Positions 49,451 through 57,100 of a DNA stretch of 64,000 nt are shown one piece after another. The DNA is taken from positions 70,671,857 through 70,735,856 of the forward strand of contig NC_083407.1 in the NCBI RefSeq assembly GCF_020745735.1. Reading direction: 5' to 3'. The notes under the pieces were generated by a model that saw nothing but the letters and a program-made list of their open reading frames with translations, did no database searches and had not been told where the DNA came from. Both the position numbers and the translations under genes were made by a program. Within the stretch, counting starts at the first letter, position 1; each line of letters opens with the position of its first letter. Source of the stretch: Hemiscyllium ocellatum (taxonomy: Eukaryota).

Positions 49451-50420
49451 CTAAGATTTAAAATGTAAGAAAAAAACTGTGATAAGAGAGCAATAGTGAA
49501 CCATATTTCTTTAGCATAGGGTCTAGATGTGGCCCTCAGAAACTCAAGGATGGTGCAGGGAGGGTAACAGAAACTAACAATCCAAAGAGTGACTGTGGAG
49601 AAGAAATGATTGTTAACAGATGTTAGCTGACCAGTAGTTGTGCTCAACATAATAAATGATAAGAACTCAATGAGTGAAATTCACAATATATTGGCATGTG
49701 TGGTGTCCAGAAGCATGCAAATAATTGGTACAACTATGAAATGTTTTTTTCCCTAGAAAAAAAGTAGATGGTAAAAAAGTGATATTAAGGTTTAGGAAGA
49801 AATGCAATGTTCAGTTGACTTTTCGTTATGACGAAAGTGGTGACAATGATAAAAATTCAGCAACTCTTCAAATGTGGATATGGGGATGAAAACAATATAC
49901 GCCAGTTAGTAGAAAGTTAAAATATCATGGCTGATGCAAATTAATAGCTAATGTTAAAGTGCAGACGGTAATAAAGAATAATATATTCACAGTAAGCTTT
50001 AAACATAGCACTAAGCTTCCAAAGTTACTCATTGTCAGCAGTGAAAGCATGAGAAGATTGCATCAAGTTGGAATGGAATTTTCACTTAAATTAATACAAA
50101 ATCAGCTGAATTTTTTTCTAAAGTAATGATGCTAATTTTTAACATTTTTTTGTTAAATATTCATGGAATAAACTGATATGATCTTTTCAGGCTTTGACTG
50201 CACAGTAGATAGAGGACGTTAATCAACCATTCTTTTACTTTGAAAGTAAGTAAGGAAGGAAAGAAGGAAGACAGAAAGGAAGGGAAGGGGCAAAAGGAAG
50301 TATTTAGTCATGTTAATTTATTAGAGTAAACTAATTTGGGTTTTGAGAAATTACTATGAAGTTAGTTTATATTAGCTTTTGAAGTTCGTATTAACAAAGA
50401 TTTTATCCCCATAATCCAAC

Positions 50421-53400
50421 CTCTGATCATAACTGTGAGTTTTGCAGAAGTAGTTGCTTTTCCAGCTTCATTCAGTGCCTCACAGACATATTCTCCTTGA
50501 TGTTCCTCTTTCTGTACTTTGTTGATTATAAGTGAGTAAGTGTCACGTTCTTGCAAACATTTGAACTCATTTTTTGATGTAATTCGTTTCCCATTGATAT
50601 ACCAATTGACATTGCTAACTTTAGTTATGACTGTGCTCAATTTAACTTCACTATCTTCATCTACAGTGATGTCTGTAAGACCTTCAACAATTATTGGTTT
50701 GTCTTTGGGGGGTATTATTGATGTTTCACCTGGCTTTCTTGGTTTAGAACTATGAATAATTCTAATTTCTTCCATTTCCTTCTCTTTTTTGAGAATTTCT
50801 GTTGGCTGTTCCACTAGAACAGATGCTGAAGGAGCATCTGTAGTAATTATTGTACCACCAACATCTCTTATGTGAGTCACTACTGTCACTTCTTCAACAG
50901 TTTCCACAGATTTAAAATCCTGAATAAAACCCTCTGATTCAGTGGTTGCCTTCTTTGAGGTGCTTTCAGAAATGGTGACAGCCTCAAGTGAGATAATCTC
51001 TTTGGCAGGAGTAATGCTGATGTGCAATTTTTCTAAATGGATTGTATCCAGTCGCTCAGCTAGAAAAGCATGCTGTTGTTCATGAGTAATAGCATGGAAA
51101 GCAGCTGCCAATTCTTTTCTTAAATCAGCTTTCTGAGGATATTCTCCTTCAAATGACAGAATTAGGTCGATTGGAGGATTGACATTAGTAATTTGGTATG
51201 TATATAAAATGCATTTGGGTTCTTTTTGAACTTTTAATTCCTTAATCTCCATCTCTTCGATGCTACCCCTTGAAAGAGATGAAAGAACACATTGCTCACT
51301 TGCCAAAGCAGATTGCAATGCTTTTCTAATCTGTATACCAACATCTAAGGTCACTGCTTGGGGAGCTTCAACATAAAGAGCTTTTTCTTTTTGGAGTACC
51401 TCACTTCCTTGTATTACATGAGTGAGTAGTTTCTCTTTTGGCTGTTTTTCTACCTTTAGAACTTCCTGCTCCGATCTTGTGATTGCTGAAGAATGTTCTT
51501 CTTCAATTAGGTGTTTTTCTTGAAGTAACAATGGAAATCTTACTGACTGTCCATGTTGGATTCTTGCTGCAAAATCCTTTTCTGCAGCCTCTAACATTCT
51601 GGTGCTTTCAATAGCTATTGCCTTTTCTTTAACCTGAACAGAAATTGAAGGGAGTTTTGATTCATATTTATCTTCACAGCTTGCTGTACGTGAGCCTTCA
51701 AACAGGGCAAGAGAACCATCTTGCACCACCTTGTTCTCGGTTATAGTGCTGAACTGTTTGACTGTGTCATCCAATTTATTTATGACTGCATGCTGTTCTT
51801 CATCTTCAATGGTAAGCATTTTCTCCTTTGCTATGTGCATTGGTACAGTTACAGATGGAAGAAACTCTTGTGGCAGAAGCTCAGTTTTGGCTTCAGCCTT
51901 TGAATTTTTAATTTCCATTTTAAGCGTTTTAGTTTGTTCAGCTGACAATTCTGGTATCTCTTCAAAAACAGCGGCATAGCTATATGCTTTCTCAAGTTTG
52001 TGTCCTGCAATATGAGTAGCTGGCTTCTCATAAGGTAGAATACCTTCCTTGTGAAGAATGCATTCAGTCATCACAGAATGAGGACATAAAATAGGCACAT
52101 ATTCTTTCGTAGGTTTAATTATTGTGGCATCTTTTGCCTCAGTTAATGGAGTTGTATGGTCTTGTGGAATAAGATGGTGCTCTTCCGATAGTAAGGAATG
52201 TAGCAATGTTGGGCTTCTTCTCGTGTCAGCTTTTTCTTCTGTAGGTACCTCAAAAGTAAAAGTTGTTTCTTTGGGCAGAGTGTCTTGACTTTGCACAATC
52301 TGTAAATGCAAAGGTTTCTTTTCTTCTTTTTTTGACGTTATTGAGATGGCACTATCTAAACCAATTATTATTTCAGCATGTTCACCCATGAGCTGTTGCT
52401 TTTCTTCGGCAGTTAAAGCAGTTCTAACAAGCTTATCTTTCATCAACGAAGCTTGCAATATATCACCTTTGTGCACTTCAAACAGAGATTCCTTTGGTAA
52501 TGATTTCTGGCTTTCAGTAACAGATGTCAAGAGTGCTTTTGGCAATTCTTTTGACAACTTTGCCTCTCTTGATGCATCTAATGTCTGTATGTCTTTTGTC
52601 ATTTCATGTCTTACTGCTTTCTTCTCTGTTGCTATGACTGCGTGAACCTCCATTTTTCTTTCTTTTAGTATTTCACATTTCTGTAACTCGGGAGTTTCAA
52701 AAGTGAACAAAGCTTCTTTGGGTGGTTCTCGCTGTCCCTCAATCTTGTAACTGTGTATAGAGTACGCCGGCTCTGTTTTTGTTATTCCTTTTTCTACAAT
52801 GTTAAGGGTTGAAGTCCTGAAGCTAGGAATTTGATGCTTTTCCTCAGATAAGATGCTTGTGTCTTTTGTTTTTGTTTTAGCTGTTACACTAGGTGAATCT
52901 CTGATACGTAAGTTACTTTCCTTTGGAATGACAGTTTGCTCCTCAACTGTGGGCAAGCGAAGGGTAGTGTCTAACTGTACTTCAGTGCTTGATAATTCAA
53001 GTATTGGTGGACTTTTAATAGGTTCATAATGCTGCTCCATATAGCCTAGACTCTCTTGAGTAGTTTGTGAATGCATTACTACCTGCCTCTTTCCAGCAAT
53101 TGTTGCTTCAGCAGCAGAGAATGTCACCTCACGCAACATGCCTGTCTGTTCACTGTGAACAGAATGTTTATCTTCAGAAGCTATCGTATAGACCAGTTGA
53201 TCTCTGTCTTGTAACTCAGCCCAAGCATCACCAGGCAATGTTACCGTGAACAAACGTGACTCTGTGGCATGGTCACTTACAGACTTTTTATATGTCTGAG
53301 TATTGTGCTTTTGAACAACTTCCTGTTTTGTATCTTCAACGGTAGCAAACGTACCATTGAACACAATTAACTCTGCAGTGCAAATTGCTTCACCAAATTG

Positions 53401-54179
53401 ATTAAATGCTTTGCAGGAATACAAACCACTGTCATCTTTCTGTGCTTTATTAATAGTCAATGAGCCAGAGCCATCAGGGTTAGAACTAAGGCAGCAATGC
53501 AAACTCTGATGAATTTGGTTGTTTTCTTTGTACCAAAGTATTTCTGGCATTGGTTCGCCAATCACTACATACTCAAATGTGGCAGGCAGGCCTTCTGAGC
53601 ACTGCAAAGATTTAAGTTCCTGGAAAAAATGTGGTGGTTGACCCCTAGGTGGATGTATGATTCCTGCTGGCATCATTGGCATTTTCTTATCTGCTAATTT
53701 TGCAATTGGGGGTTTTGCAGAGGATTTCCTGAACCCTTCCTTTGGTTTGATCTTCAGGTATGCACTACATGAAGTCTCTCCAAGTGCATTAGTAGCACAG
53801 CAGGTATATTGTCCCTCATCTGTAAATTTTGCATAAGGTATGATTAGACTATATTCATCCCTATCATAAACAAACTTGTAGTTTGATGAAGGAGTCAATT
53901 TTTTACTGTTATAAAACCACTGAATAGAGGGTTTTGGTAATCTGGTGACAGTAACTGAGAATTTAGCTACATCTTCCACAACTACCTCTATACTAGAAAT
54001 GCGCTTAACAAATACTGGCACTGTTTGTAGAGGCTTAGCATCAGTGGTAATGTCCAAACCGCTAGAAAGGGCTGCAGTTTCAGGCTTGAGTTCAAATGTT
54101 TTGTCTGACACATGAAGTTCACTGCTGTAGGAATCTTCCCTTTCATCTTCAGCAGCGATGGTAACAGAGCTAGAAAATT
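50421..54179 (-). CDS. ttn: titin N2B exon (two Ig, N2B unique sequence, one Ig), 1253 codons
   Basis: Acceptor tttatacag|AA at 54180, donor AG|GTTGGA at 50420; 3759 bp, phase 1/1; peptides match recalled human exon 49 (PPHFFQELKSLQCSEGLPATFEY, LHLQIVQSQ, RFPLLLQEK, IQIRKALQSALASEQ). Confidence 0.95.
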
Positions 54180-57100
54180 CTGTATAAAAAATAAGATGCT
54201 TAACTTTAGAAAGCATGTTGATTGTGAGTAATACTGGAAACTGGAAGAAAATTACAAATATTAATGGTAGATGTTTGCATAACAAACTCAAGTTGCTTCA
54301 AAATAATACAAATACAGTTTCTATAGTAGTCTGGGATGCTGTGTAGAAAGTCAGAAAAGGTGGATGAATGTTTTTCGACCACTTTGAATATCTCATTACA
54401 TGAAGAAAAACTTGCTGTCATGATTCAAATTAAAATTGAACTATTTAAGTTAAACTTTATTGAGATTTGTTGATCCTAAATGTGTGACTTCTGAAAAAAA
54501 ATCATTTATAGATAATTTTAATGTCAAATCTATATTCTCCATTTCCTAATCAAGGTGAGTAATAAGGAGCTCTGTAGTTTGTTGTATGCTGGTGGTGGAG
54601 ATACATCCTGCCATGACAACATTCCAGGATAGTCATTGACACTATTTATTACTGCACAAAAATGCATTGCATGTTACAAATTTTCTAAAGGCCCAAATAA
54701 TTTCTAATATAAACTTTATTCCATCACTGAAATACATACTTTTCAATCACAAAAATTGTCTTTGTATCATAACCAAGCTAAAAGAAAAATGTATTCCTAC
54801 CTTTACTTTATTAATAACTCTAACAAAATAATAAGTTTCGTAGTCTGCTAAGTTTTTAAGCTGAAAAATAACCCAGGTATCATTTGTAAACCTTGTTAAT
54901 CTTCTGGTAACCCAATGTTGTCAAACCAGGAGACAACCTTGTTTAAAAGCAAGCCAGGACTCGTCCAATGGTTTGGACGTTAGATGTAGCACCCATTCCA
55001 CTCAGAACCTGATTCCTGCAAATCTCCTCTTAGTAGCAATAAAATCCTGATATTGGCTTTAACATCTTCTGACCATCGCAAAAGAAAATCAGGAGTTCCT
55101 GTTCGTGATTGGTGTCCAGCAATCCATATGGAACATAAGGCTGAATTTTACAGTTGCCTTTGAGACCCCAAATTCAGGGTGAGACCCACTCGCAAAGGTG
55201 GGACTGGTTCAGTGATTTTTACTGATGGAAATCAATTAATTGACTGTACTTGAAAGTCCATTATCCAATTATGAATAATGGGTGAAAGTTTCCTGATGCT
55301 ACCAGACTGCTGGATTGGCAGTCCTGAGGTCCTAGCAATAACTGAGAGAGGCCACAGCTGCTGAGGGACAATGAGACCCTGCAAGGAAAATCTAAAATTC
55401 AGGATGGCCAAGGGAGATAGGCCACATCAACGAAAGAGAAAACTCCTCAATGGATCATTAGGGGTGTGGAAGTTGTCTTTCAAAGCTTTCTCGGACATTG
55501 ACCCTCTGGCTGTGATACATCAGCATCACCACAATGTTAATTTAGTACAGCTGGTGGACCAATAAAGGAGGCAAAATACATGCTGACAGATCCATAAATT
55601 GGGTCCATAAATTGGGTTCTTACTTGAACCCTCAAATTATGTCACTGACTATCTTCCTCCATGGAGTAGATAGTAACCCACACTGCAGCCCACCAAAGGA
55701 AAACTTTCCTATCTGCAAAACAATCAGAGAAAATCACACTAACACAGTTCCCTCCTAATTAACCAGTTAACCTCACCCACTTTCTCATCCCTTGTCATCA
55801 CTCAGGGTCTTGTAAATTCAGCCTAGCTTTTGTGGACATCACTTAAGTGCAGAATAACATTCATCATGTTGATTCTACATTCAAATGATTTACCAATGTT
55901 CACAGACCACTGTGAAATGGCCCACATCTCTGCATTAGCTCCAGTTTTTAAGGGACCAGAGATAAGTGGAAGAAAACATGCATTATGTATCAATTGCATT
56001 ATCACTTGAAAATAACACCAGAGGTACTATCATTCACTACTCTATGCAGCATCAGAACATGGTATATTCACAATATACAGCAACAGAAACCTGTACAAGG
56101 AATGAATGATGCCTGTGTTAAGCAACTTCTCAGAAAAAATGGAAGTCTTGCATTTTTTCAAACATCATGTCTTAAATCATGTCAAATGGGGCAGGTAAAT
56201 CATGGAAGACAACTTGTGCTTTCATACAACCAGATGGTTGTACTTATCAGAACATAACTGACAAACATAGTGACCAAAGTATTAATTTATGCTTATAGCA
56301 CAAACAATATAACTTTGAAAAAAGAATTGGCATTTATAGCATTCAACCCATTAAAGCCTATTATTCATTACCAAATAATTTACACATGTTGGACAAATAT
56401 TAAACATTGATTTCAATGGAAAATATACATTTTAAATGTATAATTAACAAATTAGAAAATAAATATCAAAATGATAGTGACAATCAAAGAAATGATCCAC
56501 ATATAATATGATTATTTGCAAACTCACCACAGAACTCAATTTCATTTGTAGCTTTACAATAACTCTGAAATCATCCATATTATGTCATTGAGGTAATTTT
56601 TGGACACAATGAATGTAAGTGTTTACTGCTTTATTGTCATAATTATGGAAACTGCTCAAAAGATTTAATTGACAGATTGGATAATCTTTCTCAGCACACA
56701 TTAAGATCTCTTGTGGCACACAGCTTACTTCATCCAAAAATAACTGTGGTAACACACATCAGTATGTTCTGCCTGGCTGTCAAATATACTCTTAATTCTG
56801 GAACTGATCAATCTCTCAAGCCCTTCTGGCCTCCAAGCAATGCCATTAAAATTAACAGTAGAATAACAAACAACACTAAACTGGCCAAATTTTGAATGCC
56901 TAGCTGTGTAGTGATGTAGCACATAGGTGCTCCAATGTCACAGCTGGTATGATGTGGTTTCTATATGGGAATTCCCAATACAGGTTTTTGTTTTTAAGCA
57001 CTGTCAAAAAGATAACACAAGGTGATTTAGGAATGCCAAGGACATTCTTACTTACAAGATAGGACATTTATGAAAAGAGTTTAATGAGATTTGTGTACTT

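Follow-up and report, generated by a model that had tools for sequence, protein, structure and literature searches.

We analysed a 64,000-nucleotide (nt) window, the whole stretch of DNA examined here and free of any N, from the 4.0 Gb genome of the shark Hemiscyllium ocellatum, which carries the N2B exon of the titin gene; all features described below lie on the minus strand. An open reading frame (ORF) of 1309 codons, open throughout (50362-54291), contains the exon at 50421-54179, which is 3759 nt long with symmetric phase and is bounded by an acceptor AG at 54181-54180, preceded by a T-rich tract, and a donor GT at 50420-50419. In order, it encodes the immunoglobulin (Ig) domains Ig24 (53749-54018; ORF residues 92-181, which is also the best stretch of the Pfam I-set match) and Ig25 (53359-53637; residues ~219-311, with Pfam Ig_3 at 219-297 and the conserved AELIVF at its end), the N2B unique sequence (N2B-us; 50701-53358; residues 312-1197) and finally Ig26 (50425-50694; residues ~1200-1289, placed by Pfam Ig-type matches at 1227-1293 and by conserved Ig columns). 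Pfam finds three I-set Ig domains around the N2B-us, giving the arrangement of two Ig domains, a long unique sequence and a further Ig domain within one titin exon. The best named match, at 68% identity over the N2B-us, is a titin-like protein from the shark Mustelus asterias, and titin-like proteins of the skate Rhinoraja longicauda, a frog and beaver are also among the closest named ones. Given the Ig domains, the splice sites and these closest titin-like proteins, we conclude that the region is the titin N2B exon of an elasmobranch. The N2B-us is a main determinant of cardiac passive stiffness and carries cardiomyopathy variants. The mammalian form acts as an entropic spring and as a docking hub, with FHL1/FHL2, kinases and chaperones as its partners, and the literature on its cardiac inclusion, FHL1/FHL2 and alphaB-crystallin binding and kinase sites covers human, mouse and elephant shark. 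The human N2B-us (572 residues) is treated as unique, non-repetitive and mostly disordered in reviews and in a 2024 structural study (PMC11530556). We present sequence-based evidence that the element is very probably an ancient, degenerate tandem array with a period of about 74 residues, whose duplications preceded the split between cartilaginous and bony fishes.

The initial annotation had proposed such a repeat within an N2B-us of ~885 residues, which we measured at 886, and had singled out self-similarity at a lag of about 74, relative to shuffled sequence, as the observation on which the proposal would stand or fall. Autocorrelation of the 886 residues with BLOSUM62, over 200 lags and against 2000 shuffles, gave a peak at exactly 74 residues with a z-score of 5.8 and 100 identities, while the highest value reached by any shuffle at any lag was 4.56. 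The peak is sharp, with negative z-scores at lags 72, 76, 77 and 78; as a positive control, two Ig domains analysed in the same way yielded a z-score of 4.6 at lag 128. The signal was strongest in the units named U2 to U5 below (ORF 525-821; z 6.8) and weaker across U5-U9 (z 3.9) and U6-U9 (z 2.5, p 0.009 at the pre-specified lag), and the shark sequence alone showed no lag-74 signal in U1 or upstream of it. At the DNA level, Tandem Repeats Finder reported no array, only two trivial micro-repeats. The top in-frame lag was 222 nt (z 4.5 against codon shuffles), and core DNA identity at this lag was 39.6% compared with 30.5% at neighbouring lags, both of which could simply follow from the similarity of the encoded protein.

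Two protein searches yielded 36 related proteins, and 29 orthologue fragments, from shark, skate, bony fish and frog, were tested for periodicity. Named orthologues came from shark, skate, the teleosts Scleropages, Coregonus and Salmo, the frog Leptodactylus fuscus and beaver (a titin-like protein, P0061). Lag 74 ranked first in 25 of these fragments (z 3.7-9.1) and no lower than fifth in the remaining four, with harmonics at lags 147/148 and 221/222, and bony fish have retained the repeat more faithfully than the shark has. These data bear on the possibility that the lag-74 peak and the K-E anchors from which the repeat was first read reflect Glu/Lys bias or helix periodicity instead of duplication. 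The composition (12.5% Glu, 9.5% Lys; P, E, V and K together 33%, hydrophobic residues 36%) and the short, common anchor motif lend this idea some plausibility, but a peak at precisely 74 that exceeds all 2000 shuffles and is flanked by negative values, together with the recurrence of lag 74 and its harmonics in all orthologues, argues strongly against it. Together with the profile controls described next, these results led us to reject it as an explanation with next to no chance of being right.

To define the units, an alignment of 29 sequences was split at the boundaries proposed in the initial annotation, the segments upstream were added, and the resulting sub-alignments were compared by hhalign, with 120 column-shuffled and 90 reversed comparisons as controls (maximum score 14.2). 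Here, 'in register' denotes an offset of 0 or ±1 or, for U1, a steady +3 to +5. Real pairs scored up to 59.5: 36 of the 45 unit pairs exceeded 14.2, 34 of these 36 were in register, and 35 of the 45 had an offset of 0 or ±1. The top pairs were U3-U4 (59.5, E 3e-12), U3-U5 (51.2), U2-U3 (44.4, E 6e-9) and U4-U5 (37.1), with the best pairs covering 74 of 74 columns. A hidden Markov model (HMM) built from U2-U5 only and scanned over vertebrate N2B-us, as had been suggested, recovered N1, U1 and U6-U9 in many species, mostly with an offset of 0 or ±1 and at scores of up to 17 bits, whereas none of 580 shuffled proteins scored above 8.6. Orthologue profiles thus bring out every unit in register, including U1 and the upstream N1. 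From the hhalign and HMM results together we conclude, at the level of sequence, that the array consists of ten units of ~74 residues and one half unit (N2), extending over ORF residues 344-1113 (window 50953-53262).

The nine unit starts first proposed (52923, 52719, 52494, 52272, 52050, 51828, 51612, 51390 and 51168) proved exact and all in frame, and the lengths of 68, 75, 74, 74, 74, 72, 74 and 74 residues were reproduced, followed by 72 for the last unit. The K-E anchor held for seven of the nine starts but not for 51612 (IEST) or 51168 (DLIL). The extent of the array, given originally as eight units plus a partial ninth, had to be revised to ~10.5 units: it reaches ~110 residues further towards the N-terminus, and the ninth is a full unit. 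The most N-terminal unit, N1 (53041-53262; ORF 344-417, 74 residues), is visible with profiles only; it scored 18-22.5 against U3, U4, U6, U7, U8 and U9 at an offset of 0 or ±1, and HMM matches were in register in six of seven species. It is followed by N2 (52924-53040; ORF 418-456), roughly half a unit of 39 residues (32 in most orthologues) with a weak off-register HMM match. U1 (52720-52923; ORF 457-524, 68 residues), the first unit of the initial annotation, matched U8 (21.0) and U4 (15.8) at an offset that stayed at +3 to +4, as would fit a shark U1 shorter by six residues.

The core of the array comprises U2 (52495-52719; ORF 525-599, 75 residues), which also scored 36.4 against U7, and U3 (52273-52494; ORF 600-673), U4 (52051-52272; ORF 674-747) and U5 (51829-52050; ORF 748-821), each of 74 residues. 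A profile search of the shark's own genome detected U3 (E 5.5e-19), U4 (E 1.9e-17) and also U5, where L746 and E749 (ORF numbering) are at least 90% conserved across the 29 sequences. The same search, covering all 4.0 Gb, returned no copy outside the N2B exon at E < 1. Next come U6 (51613-51828; ORF 822-893, 72 residues; U5-U6 28.4, U6-U7 28.9), which matched the U2-U5 HMM in register at 12.4 bits, and U7 (51391-51612; ORF 894-967, 74 residues; 9.9 bits in register, U3-U7 31.1). The array closes with U8 (51169-51390; ORF 968-1041, 74 residues; U2-U8 28.0, U6-U8 23.4) and U9 (50953-51168; ORF 1042-1113, 72 residues; U4-U9 26.7), which score 33.2 against each other. The C-terminal tail, C1 (50701-50952; ORF 1114-1197), has no lag-74 signal, and its profile matches to the units were weak and off-register (probability ≤0.7%), placing it outside the array.

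Identity between units is low (10-30%). Every unit nevertheless shares a set of short conserved elements. The junction motif, L-P-K-E-x-x-[F/L]-x-x-x-x-P, is followed by an Ala/Glu/Leu-rich, helix-prone centre (A17, E32-E33-K, L37, E40, L45) and a C-terminal part in which K58-E59 precedes a hydrophobic L-x-L-Q-V-[V/I] and the unit closes with L75-P76. The most conserved columns are E2 (90 of 93 units), E59 (86 of 93) and L75 (83 of 93), with K1, F/L5, P10, A17, E33, L37, E40, L45 and L66 also conserved. The recurring positions listed in the initial annotation (KE..[FL]....P, A..EEK..L..E, K58-E59 and L-Q-V) coincide with the most conserved alignment columns. Pfam holds no family for this unit, nor for the 886 residues between Ig25 and Ig26, and a profile search of the PDB with the unit gave only non-significant coiled-coil rows. 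We also considered a super-repeat of two units, which was rejected as adjacent and next-but-one units showed no consistent difference in score. Separately, there are hints of an older half-period of ~37 residues: many orthologues show z-scores of 2.6-5.3 at lags 37/38, 110/111 and 185, the small number of profile matches that are off-register lie at ±36-39, and N2 is about half a unit long. Direct comparison of unit halves gave P 0.015 only, leaving half-unit duplication as a hint.

The age of the array was addressed with a maximum-likelihood tree of 83 units, in which units grouped by position, not by species, requiring seven label changes compared with 54 for shuffled labels. The duplications therefore predate the split between cartilaginous and bony fishes, and the ancient repeat origin suspected from the shark sequence is supported. 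Unit length is also stable: U3-U7 are mostly 72-75 residues long across a set of 20 full-length sequences spanning shark to frog, against a range of 43-125 residues for C1. Two departures from this regularity were observed. U1, at 68 residues here, has 64-65 in Mustelus and the skate and 74 in bony fish, which looks like a small elasmobranch-specific deletion within an otherwise length-invariant array. In P0027 (L001:1001-3994, run SRR18112698), U3, U5 and U6 cluster together and not with their positional counterparts, on long branches and with odd composition. Unit turnover or homogenisation confined to this lineage could explain the pattern, as could a tree artefact.

Several considerations weigh against reading the whole N2B-us as one ancient array that functions largely as a disordered spring. 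The shark sequence alone shows clear similarity only among U2-U5, and N1 and U1 emerge only with orthologue profiles, at scores (15-22) modestly above the control maximum. The orthologues share ancestry and are hence not independent samples of the periodicity. The prediction of disorder discussed below is drawn from a 29-row alignment only, and a hydrophobic content of 36% is high for a pure random coil. The proposed role in FHL docking, also discussed below, draws on position and a published AlphaFold2 prediction. We nevertheless consider a degenerate, ancient tandem array to be a highly probable description of the element, given the agreement of shuffles, profile-profile comparison, orthologue conservation and the unit tree.

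The retained units in each lineage were assigned with unit-specific HMMs. Fishes show no change in unit number. The frog retains U3-U9 and part of N1, with ~60 residues fewer between N1 and U3. No amniote came up in word-indexed protein searches that started from P0027 or from the frog protein; the beaver protein, P0061, was found through the membership of P0026 in a 90%-identity cluster. Its N2B-us of ~575 residues begins the array with a fused U3/U4 remnant, followed by U5-U9 at implied starts of 407, 481, 549, 623 and 698, a spacing of 68-75 residues; unit-specific HMMs identified U6-U9, whereas U5 showed only with the generic unit HMM. The suggestion that mammals keep the same spacing, made originally for the human sequence, thus holds for beaver titin. 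P0028 (62% identical to beaver; N2B-us of 574 residues) has part of U3, then U5-U9, while P0030 retains U7-U9 only. The beaver lag-74 signal (z 2.4-2.7; p 0.011 at z 2.4) is nominally significant at the pre-specified lag but well short of the scan-wide threshold of ~4.1, and this weakness is a plausible reason why the repeat has gone unnoticed in human and mouse.

The long form, common to sharks and bony fish, is ancestral, with amniotes having lost roughly four units, mostly N-terminal, and with no expansion in the shark. The proposal that length changes by whole units is only roughly correct: the sizes of the losses are approximately those of units, but unit number does not vary in fishes and the ends of the deletions in the frog, amniotes and P0030 fall off the unit borders. 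Our proposed history is that the N2B-us arose by internal duplication, with each unit since maintained as its own orthologue, and that in amniotes the spring was shortened to ~575 residues by loss of most N-terminal units while U5-U9 were kept.

We modelled the whole N2B-us with AlphaFold2 using the 29-row alignment, and a single U3 unit using 85 rows. For the whole N2B-us, the predicted local confidence score (pLDDT) was below 50, including in U3-U7, except in two places. The first is a helix in U2 (residues 229-262 of the N2B-us, U2 positions 16-49; pLDDT 56-77). The second is a predicted alpha/beta domain at 51031-51348 (N2B-us residues 671-776, ORF 982-1087; pLDDT 64-91, and 80-91 for much of it) with the order helix-helix-strand-strand-strand-helix, spanning U8 and the first half of U9. 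In this model U8 carries the first helices and two strands and U9 the third strand and last helix; the third strand corresponds to the K-E-x-x-F-x-F-E-x-P junction motif and the last helix to the helix-prone unit centre. The single U3 unit gave no compact fold, with one helix at positions 11-27, a pLDDT of 66 for the model and a predicted template modelling (pTM) score of 0.16. A Foldseek search of the PDB with the structural domain returned no match at E ≤ 0.001. Among the weak rows (E 0.06-0.4) were several alpha-beta-beta-beta-alpha folds of double-stranded RNA-binding domains, for example those of Staufen, NF90 and RNase III, a likeness that may come down to a simple topology they have in common.

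The predicted domain closely resembles one already known. Sun et al. described a 115-residue structural domain at residues 354-468 of the human N2B-us, predicted and then verified by magnetic tweezers (PMC11530556). The two share three strands between two helical regions, a size of ~106-115 residues and the same relative place, residues 671-776 lying in the C-terminal third of the shark N2B-us. They differ in context: the human domain was described as isolated within disorder, whereas the two halves of the shark domain are homologous to each other and to the units upstream. We propose a model in which N1-U7, predicted to be mostly disordered, would provide the extensible entropic spring, while U8 and U9 would fold jointly into the small alpha/beta domain known from human N2B-us.

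The homology of U8 and U9 to the other units, and their shared register, raises the question of whether each junction can fold in the same way, with a hairpin from one unit joined by the first strand of the next and by the helices on either side. On this view the N2B-us would consist of alpha/beta modules of marginal stability, linked in a chain and unfolding at a few piconewtons, in place of a plain coil. Several features fit such a scheme: the domain has its strands in the conserved beta-prone segments of the unit (1-8, 64-69) and its helices in the helix-prone one (~11-49), the predicted helices of U2 and U3 fall in the same helix-prone segment, and length conservation is strict and the hydrophobic content is 36%. 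On the other hand, the very alignment that gives pLDDT 80-91 for U8-U9 leaves U3-U7 below 50, the single unit does not form a compact fold even with 85 rows, and deletion of the one human domain abolished the only unfolding step (PMC11530556). We accordingly regard cryptic folded modules as improbable, and the idea of repeated folding modules in the initial annotation was not upheld outside the U2 helix and the U8-U9 domain. Its companion suggestion, repeated binding motifs along the units, is plausible.

With respect to binding, the human FHL2-binding fragment comprises residues 79-308 of the N2B-us, and 24 LIM sites of ~5 residues have been predicted along the human sequence, pairing as antiparallel strands with a LIM zinc finger; the 79-308 fragment contains 14 of these and the structural domain eight (PMC11530556). 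By position in the beaver protein, the fragment and the domain would correspond to U4-U7 and U8-U9, respectively. We tentatively suggest that beta-prone and K-E motifs at a fixed spacing of 74 residues could act as evenly spaced docking sites for multi-LIM partners such as FHL1 and FHL2, although the odds are somewhat against this. A bolder version, which we put forward as speculation that is probably wrong, is that the spring is not a featureless coil but a register-locked periodic device, either a chain of about ten low-force mechanical fuses, with every junction able or templated to fold like U8/U9, or a ruler of LIM-docking strands. Either way, the known structural domain would be one of a family of ten and the last of them to stay well preserved; in the ruler version, FHL occupancy would report stretch unit by unit.

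Set against any functional role for the spacing is the view that the repeat, though real, is a relic of the spring's first lengthening, with total length, charge and scattered sites being what matters. The predicted disorder of most units and their low pairwise identity are in keeping with this, as is the loss of several units in amniotes and in the P0030 lineage, which nonetheless kept a working N2B exon. Harder to accommodate is the parallel conservation of the same columns (E2, E59 and L75 above all) in units that have been separate since before sharks and bony fish diverged. The near absence of insertions and deletions within units, when C1 varies threefold, is likewise unexpected for an unconstrained coil. 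A relic devoid of function is therefore a serious alternative, albeit one we judge to be unlikely, slightly more so than the docking proposal.

Searches of the accessible full-text literature turned up no prior account of a repeat within the N2B-us; a review of N2B and N2A, the 2024 structural study (PMC11530556) and a 2025 paper on cartilaginous-fish connectin all refer to a 'unique sequence'. The human and mouse N2B-us correspond to that of the shark in exon, in position between Ig25 and Ig26 and, in a mammal (beaver), in orthologous sequence. They differ in that a 'non-repetitive' 572 residues stands against 886 residues with 10.5 homologous units in the shark, the mammalian form being truncated to ~6 units. 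Tandem repeats in titin springs are already known, so this is a new repeat family within a well-known element. One such spring is the PEVK region, with PPAK repeats of 26-28 residues and poly-E segments, and, like the N2B-us, it is a spring element of I-band titin that is disordered and built of tandem repeats. The periods differ (26-28 versus 74), as does the content of P, E, V and K, at ~70% in the PEVK region (PMC12241362) compared with 33% here, and the N2B-us does not qualify as a PEVK-type sequence. Moreover, the PEVK region is spread over many small exons with a highly variable number of units, whereas the N2B-us occupies one large exon and its unit number is fixed across fishes. The Z-repeats of titin, ~45-residue units that bind alpha-actinin, are likewise short tandem units acting as repeated docking sites, an analogy that is only proposed for the N2B-us, and they differ in titin region, length and partner.

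These observations are mainly relevant to specialists in titin and cardiac mechanics. A unit register running from shark to mammal offers a coordinate system in which binding sites, phosphosites and variants can be compared across units and species, and possibly an explanation for the many predicted FHL2 sites along the N2B-us. The recently discovered structural domain gains an evolutionary origin in two units of the array, and the short mammalian spring can be seen as what truncation left of a longer ancestor. Fish and shark sequences, which have kept the repeat far more intact than mammals have, are natural material for dissecting the module.

Some features at the edges of the exon and of the N2B-us were also observed. 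The open frame continues past both splice sites into the introns (window 50362-50420 and 54180-54291), by ~37 codons upstream and 19 downstream, so ORF-based protein entries in public collections exceed the exon. The first ~80 residues of the N2B-us (ORF 312-390, window 53130-53358), in which TESRLY and YTIGTED are conserved, match several proteins that lack the remainder. Among these are P0033, an Astyanax 'Ig-like domain-containing protein', and P0032, a JGI metagenome protein labelled 'RTX toxin-like' that is probably a mis-annotated eukaryotic titin.

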